Program-made: the position numbers and the translations under genes
Assembly (NCBI RefSeq): GCF_040938485.1
Contig: NW_027270954.1
Span: 1,178,001 to 1,242,000, forward strand
Reading direction: 5' to 3'
From: Diadema antillarum
Lineage: Eukaryota
Length of the DNA stretch: 64,000 bases
Part shown: positions 36,110 through 63,539 of the stretch, in pieces
Numbering within the stretch: the stretch's first letter is position 1
How the letters are laid out: each line of letters begins with the position of its first letter
The notes under the pieces: model-generated
What the model saw: the letters and a program-made list of their open reading frames with translations, nothing else
What the model was told of the DNA's origin: nothing
Databases searched by the model: none

Positions 36110-39100
36110 ACAGAATCCCAGTGCCAGATAAACTCTTTGCTCTCATAGTACCAAAAAAATGTGACATTGACACACTTTGTAAATGCAAGGTGTTTCACCG
36201 TACGTCTTTTTACTCGAAGGTTGAATGGCATCTGTATAAAGTAAACGAATGAAATAGGTTTCGTCTTTCGGCTTTCTTGGCATTTGTCGCAGCTTTATCC
36301 GTTTAACAACGAAAAAAAAAATCATAATGAGTGGGAATTTGAACAGAAAAATGATAAATAGTTTGAATCATGCATATGTGACCCGATACATCAAAAGGAT
36401 CCTTAAGTCGCTGACGGGTATAACAGCCGAGCATGGCCCAGAAAAATGCTGTTTTCAGGCCTTTCCTTTGATCATTTAGCTCTGAAATTTCGGCAGATGA
36501 TAGAAGATACGTTAGACTACAAAACTGTGTTAAAACAGAAATCCGAACGTTTTGACAGATTTTGGCGATCTGACTTTAAAGTCGATTTTCTCGGCTCACC
36601 CGTCAGCGACTTTAGGATCCGTTTGTTGTAGCGGGTCACATATTGTTATACATGGATATTTCATAATGCGTACGGAAATAAGTAAATTCCTGCAACGATA
36701 TAGGCCTATGATTGAGAGAGTGTTTATCCTGCTGTGGCTGTTGGTCGTTTGAGTTTGGTGGGTATTGGTTACAGCATTGGCGGACACCATATAACTTTAC
36801 TTACTCATTCTTTTATCAACCCACTTAGATGTACATTCAACTTGGTCTGGAATTGAGATGTTGATCTGGTATCAAGTCACTGGACAAAATTAAATCATCC
36901 TGCTGCTTATCTGTGTCTTCGGTTTGTTTTTGAAGGATGTTGTGCAGATATTAGCAACTGCAGGGATTACATGATTGGTTCTTATCCATGTTTGAGATTC
37001 TCTTGGGTATGAAATATACGGCCTACATATTTGGCAGCAAAAGGTGAATAGATGATTTTACTCATTTCCATGTCGTTGATTTTCTTTTTCTAATATAAGA
37101 CGAGCTGTCACCAATATTGCTTTCCTGCCCATCAAATATGAGTTTAATGAGCGACACACAGACGACTTGTGTCACGTGGGAACAACCCGTCTTCCACGAG
37201 ATCACTGGAGACGACTTAGACATCACTTGTAACTATGACAACGGTGAAGGATGTTTCCATTTTGGTAATCATCAAATCACGTGCAGCGCAACCAATCTAG
37301 ACAACGGAAAGACCGCTGTATGCAGCTTCCGCATAGAAATTGAACGTGAGTATGATCATTCTATGATTGCATATATGCATGGATACATTCAGGTTAGAAA
37401 CAGGAAGTTTTGATGGAAAAGATTAAAATCATACCACGAATATTACCATGACTCAAAATGTTGCAACAAAACTGGAAAGGCAGAGTTTGATGCGAGTCTC
37501 AATGATATTATAGCTTGTAGAAATGGACGTGAGGAATGAATCAAAAGTTTATCTGTTATATTGTTCTTCATGTTTTGTTCCAAATATGGGTTATTTTACC
37601 CCTTTGTTTGTAAATTGTATCATGGAGTTGGACCCAACTTGGATTCGTAGCAATTTGCTCTACCAATGAAATACGTTGAGCAAACAGCTTGATTATTAAA
37701 TAAACAGGTCGATAGAGACAAAACAAAACTTATAACTAAACAGATGAATTAGAAAAAAAGTAGATAAGTAGCATACGAATAATCTTGATAGTGCAAAAAA
37801 ACAGTATATCATCCAATAATGATAAGGCCCTAATGATACTTAGAGACACTGAGTTAGAAACGAATACGACCAACAATTATTCCCCAGTTAAAAAAAAAAA
37901 GAAGATTACGTTGCCCATTTCCTGAAATCAACATGGAAAATATTTCTCAACAAAAACCGTAAGTAGCCTATCAAAGACAAACATAATATTAACCTTACAT
38001 TACGTCTCACTTGGCAGTACTCTAGCTGGCTTGAGTCCTTGTTTCTTTCGTAATTGTTAGATGTTATTTGACGTTGTTATTGTGAAGTGTTCCTTAACTG
38101 ACGAGTGACAAATTTTGGGATACAATTTCTTTATCCACCTGTGTGTCAAACTTTTCTGTCCTAGCACACCCCTGTCCGAGCCTTGACGCCCCAGCCAATG
38201 GGGCTATCGCGTGTGACGGCTGGCTGGGGGGCGTGTTCTGTAACACGTTCTGCAATGATCGCTACGACGTGCCCTACGTACGAGGTTTAACCGCAACAAC
38301 GCAGTATGTGTGTACCCATTCTGGCGTATGGCAACCGCACTCCACGGTCTTAGATTGCACAGGTAAAACATAACTTATAAAGGATAATAAATAACCGTAA
38401 TGTCATGTTTGTACGTGTACAGGGTGTAATAATTTCAGAAGTAAACAAAATATGTTTCAATGGCTCCTCAAAATGTAAACATCGTCGTTGAGAAATGGCA
38501 TAGAGGATTGTTTAACCAAGTCAGGAGAGAACATTAGAGAATACAAAAAATGTAAATAAAAGAGACTGACCAAAAACAACAACAACAACAACAACAGTAA
38601 AACATGTGCTGACATAGCGTAATTCATTGCTCATCCGATTAAAGCAAGAACCGGGCAAGCGGAAACACCGAGCAGTAAAAATTCAGTATAACAAACTTGT
38701 ACGTGTTGTTTTCACCGCTTTAATAATCGGAGCCACAACCGCTTTATCGGGATACCCTTAGAATGAAACACTTGCGTTATCCAGTATTAATGTCTAAAAC
38801 TCGCTAGATTTGTAATTGCACGTTTTTGTATCTACTTCTTGTGACTATTTTTGTTTTGATACTCTTTTTTTTTTTTAGTTTTCAGTTCTATACCAAAAAA
38901 AAAAACCCAAACAAACAATCAAAGACTGACATTTTGGAAGTGTAATGATTTGTGCTCTGTCTGTAGTTTTTAGTGGCTCACTTTGTAAATTTCTTTCAAC
39001 AAATTAAACGCACTATTTACTTCACAGAATCCCGAAATGTGAGGCGCTTGCAACTTCCACTTGAGTTTTACTTTGAGGGATCTTGCATAGATTATGACAC

Positions 39101-63539: not shown

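Follow-up and report, generated by a model that had tools for sequence, protein, structure and literature searches.

SVEP1 is a human disease gene, implicated in coronary disease, glaucoma and lymphatic defects, and the cleavage of its product has been known since 2012. To our knowledge, the SVEP1 region bearing the cleavage site is without a domain model, and its mention in the literature is a figure label, 'SEA module'. The mouse protein, Polydom/SVEP1, is secreted as fragments of 115 kD and 270 kD (PMC10281526). In human SVEP1, a furin site lies shortly ahead of R997, and the 'SEA module' is labelled in the AlphaFold model (PMC13722417). In GPR126, Notch and MUC1, cleavage of the SEA-type domain takes place in the beta2-beta3 loop, and the two halves stay non-covalently bound until force acts on them (PMC6954182). 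Here, a stretch of 64,000 nucleotides from Diadema antillarum (assembly GCF_040938485.1, contig NW_027270954.1, positions 1,178,001 to 1,242,000 of the forward strand; hereafter the window) was analyzed, which carries a large, multi-exon SVEP1-like adhesion gene on the + strand that extends beyond the window end. Judged by profile comparison, the two linkers of this gene, L1 and L2, represent diverged copies of a single domain, predicted to be folded, that lies outside every Pfam family, and the first of them is the module of true SVEP1/Polydom that holds its furin site. The exons and repeats of the two cassettes and of the part between them, with secondary structure elements as predicted, are as follows:

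38165-38362, + strand: six-cysteine (6-Cys) selectin-type CCP exon ahead of SEA-like module 1 (AG/GT, phase 1 at both ends)
39028-39340, + strand: L1a, first half of module 1 (beta1, alpha1, Cys1-4, beta2), then the multibasic loop (canonical splice sites)
39228-39329, + strand: multibasic loop of module 1 (motif positions)
39678-39922, + strand: L1b, with beta3 (ILVEFEI), alpha2, beta4 and the Cys hairpin into the GCC repeats (phase-2 junction with L1a)
about 41148-41291, 41713-41856 and 42119-42262, + strand: three Ephrin_rec_like (GCC) repeats of cassette 1 in three exons (PF07699; 51.2, 45.9 and 50.6 bits)
42493-55159, + strand: middle part with EGF run, PTX/LamG-like segment and TSP1 repeat (54989-55138); EGF and TSP_1 by Pfam
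56731-56937, + strand: divergent 6-Cys CCP exon ahead of SEA-like module 2 (splice sites; hhalign to the CCPs preceding L1)
57858-58033, + strand: L2a, with beta1, alpha1, Cys1-3 and the start of beta2 of module 2 (AG/GT)
59156-59258, + strand: L2b, a mini-exon with Cys4, RRKR and beta3 (VRISVV) (AG/GT; phase 0 in, phase 1 out)
59980-60150, + strand: L2c, with alpha2, beta4 and the Cys hairpin of module 2 (AG/GT)
about 60911-61045, 61484-61606 and 63413-63535, + strand: three Ephrin_rec_like (GCC) repeats of cassette 2 (PF07699; 49.0, 48.3 and 37.9 bits)

All linker exons, as predicted from the genomic sequence, have canonical AG/GT sites, and their phases chain consistently. All searches were run with single exons that had not been joined.

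An initial annotation of this DNA had aligned the two linkers by eye and had proposed an internal duplication of the cassette formed by CCP, linker with furin site and three GCC repeats. At the pairwise level alone, the duplication claim is only borderline. BLASTP between the L1 and L2 linker exons gave no significant match; Smith-Waterman comparison with shuffling gave a marginal result for L1a against L2a (z 3.3, p 0.0075) and no signal for the remaining exon pairs. Had the comparison stopped at pairwise BLASTP, the alignment of the linkers would have had to be given up, and it was the profile methods that overturned this outcome. A hidden Markov model (HMM) of 14 linker-1 modules, all from species other than the source, scored 72 bits on window L1a and 21 bits on L1b (positions 72-150). 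The same model matched L2a with 16.5 bits (HMM positions 8-52), L2b with 4.0 bits (60-78) and L2c with 8.6 bits (97-140), these matches being colinear. Foreign L2 modules were matched over their full length, with the highest score for Saccostrea (21.8 bits, HMM positions 9-154). As a control, the model was run against 1,642 open reading frames (ORFs) of the window (stop-free, six frames, whole window minus the intronic 58974-59016), and the top four were, in this order, L1a, L1b, L2a (E 7e-4) and L2c. The reciprocal L2 HMM placed window L1a first. A further weak colinear HMM match of L2b reached 3.0 bits. By hhalign, the L1 and L2 families matched with 96.1% (E 3e-9), and the L1 family matched 11 L2 sequences with 97.5% (E 6.4e-12) over 150 colinear columns.

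In BLASTP comparisons with homologues, L2c matched Asterias P0030 in the latter half of its L1 module (E 1e-4), and L1b matched sea urchin P0001 (E 3e-11). The cysteine spacing is C-x26-C-x5-C-x8-C in L1 vs C-x25-C-x5-C-x9-C in L2, and in both the multibasic motif follows Cys4 by 2-5 residues. The short L2b exon provides the Cys4, basic site and beta3 found in L2 homologues, the basic site being present in most of these. The strings quoted in the initial annotation were all found in the sequence (FYFEGSC, LQQTF, RRRRS / RRKRA, ILVEFEI / VRISVV, ECDAGY / VCPEGF). Its L2 string I.NCA was likewise present, except that the V read there is intronic (gta); spliced L2 reads ...CDIEDIE and then continues into the next exon.

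The homology extends to the flanks, since each linker is preceded by a 6-Cys CCP and followed by three Ephrin_rec_like (GCC) repeats. The CCP family preceding L1 matched the family preceding L2 by hhalign with 97.8% (E 1.2e-12), and the CCP ahead of L2 scored higher with the CCP ahead of L1 than with the other CCPs of the gene. Among PDB entries, a profile of the window module ahead of L1 and its orthologues matched (E 1e-6) the CCPs of E-selectin, pappalysin, MASP and factor H. No PDB match was obtained with the profile of the CCPs ahead of L2, and in BLASTP the window CCP of this type matched only the corresponding CCPs of homologues. Single window CCP sequences remained under the Pfam gathering score, and 38165-38362 had no match to Pfam Sushi. 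A non-CCP identity for the modules ahead of the linkers was nevertheless dismissed on the basis of the hhalign result and the selectin-type PDB matches. The six GCC repeats scored 37.9-51.2 bits, all above the PF07699 gathering cutoff of 23.1. Thus, the cassette is shared in all three parts, because linkers, CCPs and GCC repeats each match separately, and the duplication put forward in the initial annotation holds.

With regard to fold, searches of sequence libraries gave no assignment. Pfam returned no family for any linker exon or for 15 homologues; the SEA family did not match the 15 L1 members at E up to 10 or the window exons at E up to 1, and no match to NOD was found for the linker modules. 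No PDB sequence was matched by the L1 profile, and hhalign against the canonical SEA domain of sea urchin hyalin gave 0.4%, i.e., no match. The autoproteolysis motif G↓SVVV is absent in both window modules and in the aligned homologues, where a convertase motif is found instead. AlphaFold2 was applied to the closest homologue of L1 (sea urchin P0001, residues 84-235, 15-row alignment). The model had a predicted local distance difference test score (pLDDT) of 78 and a predicted template modelling score (pTM) of 0.70. Its element order is beta1, alpha1, beta2, loop, beta3, alpha2, beta4 and hairpin, with the basic motif in loop 57-67. For L2, a model of Saccostrea P0014 repeated this order and placed RRTKR in loop 62-76; since the alignment behind it included L1 rows, it is not independent of the L1 result. 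The basic loop is predicted to be flexible (pLDDT about 61-63).

The best Foldseek match of the L1 model was the Gpr126 ectodomain. An exhaustive structure aligner scored the L1 model highest with the Gpr126 SEA domain (8.6), followed by two entries of the MUC16 SEA domain (8.2 and 8.1), a transmembrane-protease SEA domain (8.0), SorCS2 (8.0) and the TMPRSS6 SEA domain (7.9). For the L2 model, generic ferredoxin-like folds came first, followed by Trop2 (8.1) and SEA (6.5-6.6). The homologue models thus suggest the ferredoxin-like order beta-alpha-beta-beta-alpha-beta with SEA domains as the nearest solved folds, the fold about which the initial annotation had asked. Accordingly, the linkers are predicted to be disulfide-stapled sandwiches of the SEA or Notch heterodimerization domain type and not loose spacers.

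The L1 loop of the window carries an unusually long basic stretch with three or four motifs, RRRR↓S (39228-39239), RSKR and KRRR↓Y (39273-39290), and RHRRR↓A (39315-39329). In L2, the motif RRKR↓A lies at 59174-59185. Across 21 homologues, R-x-[KR]-R occurred 38 times in 5,834 linker residues vs 14 times in 41,689 other residues, i.e., about 19-fold more densely, and in several homologues it was confined to the linker loops. The strict motif was found, often twice, in the loop of most L1 modules and of the SVEP1 linkers of fish and Daphnia; P0012, P0016 and tick P0072 have an L1-type loop with only related basic motifs. At the aligned position of L2, R-x-[KR]-R was found in the window and likewise in P0002, P0007, P0014, P0016, P0028, P0059 and P0066. 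The multibasic motifs therefore look selected when their distribution is considered, and cleavage appears strongly plausible for L1 and moderately plausible for L2. In some homologues, further convertase-type motifs were noted outside the linker loops. RQKR near the N-terminus of P0007 (residue 77) and P0014 (residue 96), both of oyster type, may be a propeptide site, and RIRR↓S at residue 3194 of Apostichopus P0031 lies at the boundary between CCP and L2.

From the homology, architecture, motif conservation and predicted fold, we infer cleavage in this species and association of the resulting chains. In this scheme, furin-type convertases of the secretory pathway would nick one or both beta2-beta3 loops, and in copy 1 their cuts may excise a short basic peptide. 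The four N-terminal cysteines would all lie before the cut, with strands of the sheet contributed from both sides; therefore, the chains are expected to remain together. They would stay joined as non-covalent heterodimeric modules, like Notch S1, MUC1 and GPR126, yielding a two- or three-chain ectodomain that could later be shed by force or unfolding. The ectodomain is thus probably nicked twice yet held together, rather than cut into free pieces. Taken as a whole, the explanation by a duplicated SEA-like cassette with convertase-nicked loops and chains that remain together is the best available, and we regard it as reasonably probable.

Some observations favour other readings: BLASTP gave no significant match between the linkers, and the distribution of the L2 site is incomplete, since the Asterias and Apostichopus proteins and P0012 lack it and the coral Stylophora has KKKR there instead. 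The former, together with an identity of only about 15-20% between L1 and L2, would be expected if their likeness were convergent or a chance cysteine pattern without any duplication. The profile-profile match, however, is colinear and full length (E 6e-12), the HMM matches are reciprocal, the flanking CCPs are homologous independently, and L1 and L2 share the same predicted topology. On these four grounds convergence was dismissed, and we consider it very improbable. A different matter is the fate of the cleaved protein. According to the initial annotation, furin would cut it into at least three chains, freeing a CCP/HYR rod, a middle piece (EGF-PTX-TSP1) and a C-terminal piece, with the linkers acting as cleavable spacers. 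The conserved multibasic motifs at both sites agree with this and make two cleavages plausible; the L2 site is not universal. Release of the pieces would also agree with the two Polydom fragments seen on reducing gels (PMC10281526), and with the position of all four N-terminal-half cysteines before the cut, so that no bridging disulfide is expected. Against it, the linker regions are predicted to be folded, with beta1 and beta2 supplied by the part N-terminal to the cut and beta3 and beta4 by the part C-terminal to it, and cleaved SEA and Notch heterodimerization modules, including the halves of Notch, MUC1 and GPR126, remain associated (PMC6954182). An antibody against the N-terminal fragment also detects Polydom bound via a site in the C-terminal fragment, which is consistent with association, although uncleaved molecules could give the same result. 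The freeing of three pieces is therefore not upheld, and we regard it as unlikely.

It is also conceivable that only module 1 is processed and that the RRKR of L2 is lineage-specific and unused or inaccessible, or that the basic clusters bind glycosaminoglycan. In favour of these readings are the homologues in which the L2 site is missing or altered and the unusual length of the L1 basic stretch in the window. R-x-[KR]-R is, however, aligned in the window and in 7/12 other L2 modules examined, it is almost absent elsewhere in homologues of 1,000-3,500 residues, and the loop carrying it is predicted to be flexible. Hence, we judge these possibilities to be somewhat less likely still than the release of free pieces. 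The explanation by two nicked modules that remain assembled is preferred, and a broader version of it can be put forward only tentatively. An ancient SEA-like domain might form a metazoan cassette, always between a 6-Cys CCP and GCC repeats, with one copy in vertebrate SVEP1 and two in a transmembrane family of corals, echinoderms and molluscs. The latter might be convertase-nicked, three-chain receptors with two force break points, one of them by the membrane, resembling Notch and adhesion GPCRs (G protein-coupled receptors).

The distribution of the module was followed in protein databases. A phmmer search with L1a against 1.8e9 representative proteins gave 13 matches, one of them spurious, and the others came from sea urchins, molluscs and annelids or were unnamed proteins; vertebrate SVEP1 was not among the matches of this search. 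True SVEP1 was reached solely via chained word searches through sea urchin paralogues. Several full-length relatives from the L1a search have the order HYR/CCP, CCP, L1, three GCC, LamG, EGF, TSP1, CCP, L2, GCC and end in a hydrophobic transmembrane stretch with a short tail. Word searches found versions of about 3,000-3,500 residues in Acanthaster, Asterias, Apostichopus and the coral Stylophora, each carrying the two modules, and also the single-module true SVEP1 of fishes, Daphnia and a tick. No match was nearer than about 55% to the window exons.

In a tree of the modules, L2 modules lay on one side of a branch (89/84), with L1 modules and SVEP1 linkers opposite. Because coral, echinoderm and mollusc rows occur on both sides of this branch, the cassette duplication is probably older than the cnidarian-bilaterian split, with the reservation that the tree has long branches. 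The intron positions of the copies differ. The only intron of L1 follows the basic loop (39340/39678), and those of L2 are situated inside beta2 between Cys3 and Cys4 (58033/59156) and after beta3 (59258/59980). This lack of shared positions fits an old duplication.

The remainder of the gene within the window conforms to the domain order of the SVEP1-like family. Exons of the 6-Cys CCP and HYR types form a rod between about 7141 and 38362 (+), and in its upstream part (7141-33455, +) 11/11 recognised CCP exons are of the six-cysteine, selectin-like kind and not of the usual four-cysteine kind. The rod is followed by cassette 1, an EGF run, the PTX/LamG-like segment, further EGF, TSP1 and cassette 2, and the window end (64000) falls directly past the sixth GCC repeat. 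For the PTX segment (52516-53811, +), Pfam on single exons gave no pentraxin or LamG match; only the ORF 53611-53811 gave a weak BLASTP match (E 3e-6), to the corresponding part of homologues. Recognisable exons start with the CCP at 7141, which has a retroelement on its upstream side. The DIRS-like ORFs of this element (window 1-2760, +) contain a reverse transcriptase (RVT_1, E 3e-12), an RVT_3 (reverse transcriptase-like) portion and a Phage_integrase-type tyrosine recombinase (E 1e-4). An interspersed repeat is present in two introns of the gene (about 58100-58900 and about 62480-63290), with similar translations on both strands, and its + strand translation contains GLIQPPPPP. A run of 131 N is located at 23373-23503, within the field of CCP/HYR exons.

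As to the significance of these results, the SVEP1 furin-site region belongs to a conserved domain family, predicted to be folded, that dates back to cnidarians; its cysteine pattern is defined, and the convertase site is placed in the beta2-beta3 loop. This provides a structural frame for SVEP1 variants near the cleavage site, e.g., R997C, and leads to the predictions that the SVEP1 fragments remain associated and that an invertebrate receptor family bears the module twice. A second copy of the SVEP1 furin-site module, on the membrane side, is added by this analysis, and the module is defined by sequence as a domain family; the present alignments could seed a new domain model.

Compared with SEA-type systems that are known to be cleaved, the window modules differ in several respects. 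The SEA domain of GPR126/ADGRG6 (PDB 6v55), which is furin-cleaved in mammals, shows no detectable sequence similarity to the module, is without the four-cysteine staple and stands in the context CUB-PTX-SEA-HormR-GAIN-7TM. Mucin SEA domains (MUC1, MUC16) self-cleave at G↓SVVV, and the Notch heterodimerization domain with its S1 furin site is preceded by LNR repeats, both unlike the window modules. The resemblance to SVEP1 is much closer. Its linker, between CCP4 and the second ephrin-receptor-like group, has the element order of L1, with beta1, helix, C-x5-C-x9-C and R-x-K-R loop, followed by beta3, helix, beta4 and Cys hairpin, and its neighbours are those seen in the window, a 6-Cys CCP before and GCC repeats behind. 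By hhalign, the L1 family matched the SVEP1 linkers in the first half with 95.7% (E 1e-8), and in the second half the L1 HMM scored 17.8 bits on fish SVEP1 residues 896-1001; L2 matched with only 70.7% (E 4e-5), and in the tree the SVEP1 linkers group with L1. The initial annotation had stated that SVEP1 carries a furin-type site at the equivalent position. This agrees with the RTKR or RGKR of fish SVEP1 in the aligned loop of the same module; the exact human motif that had been named, RIKR, was not confirmed.

True SVEP1 nevertheless differs from the window gene. It has a single copy of the module, no TSP1, a long CCP array past the pentraxin domain, and an N-terminal vWA domain, and it is described as a secreted matrix protein; in fish SVEP1, about 45-55 additional residues separate Cys4 from the basic site. 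The window gene combines EGF, PTX-like, TSP1 and CCP domains with a second module and GCC repeats, and its homologues end in a transmembrane helix. An assignment as true SVEP1 orthologue was rejected, as in the window the PTX-like segment is followed by EGF, TSP1, CCP, L2 and three GCC repeats and not by a long CCP array. The invertebrate SVEP1-like transmembrane proteins (Stylophora XP_022794653, Acanthaster XP_022110885 and Saccostrea LOC134235178) have only 35-55% identity to the window gene, with no close orthologue found, and one to three GCC repeats past module 2. However, they are alike in domain order and in both SEA-like modules, and their order of CCP/HYR rod, CCP, L1, GCC, EGF, PTX/LamG, EGF, TSP1, CCP, L2 and GCC is matched by the window. 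Thus, the simplest reading places the window gene in this transmembrane family, in which, by the domain order of its sequences, copy 2 of the module sits near the membrane.
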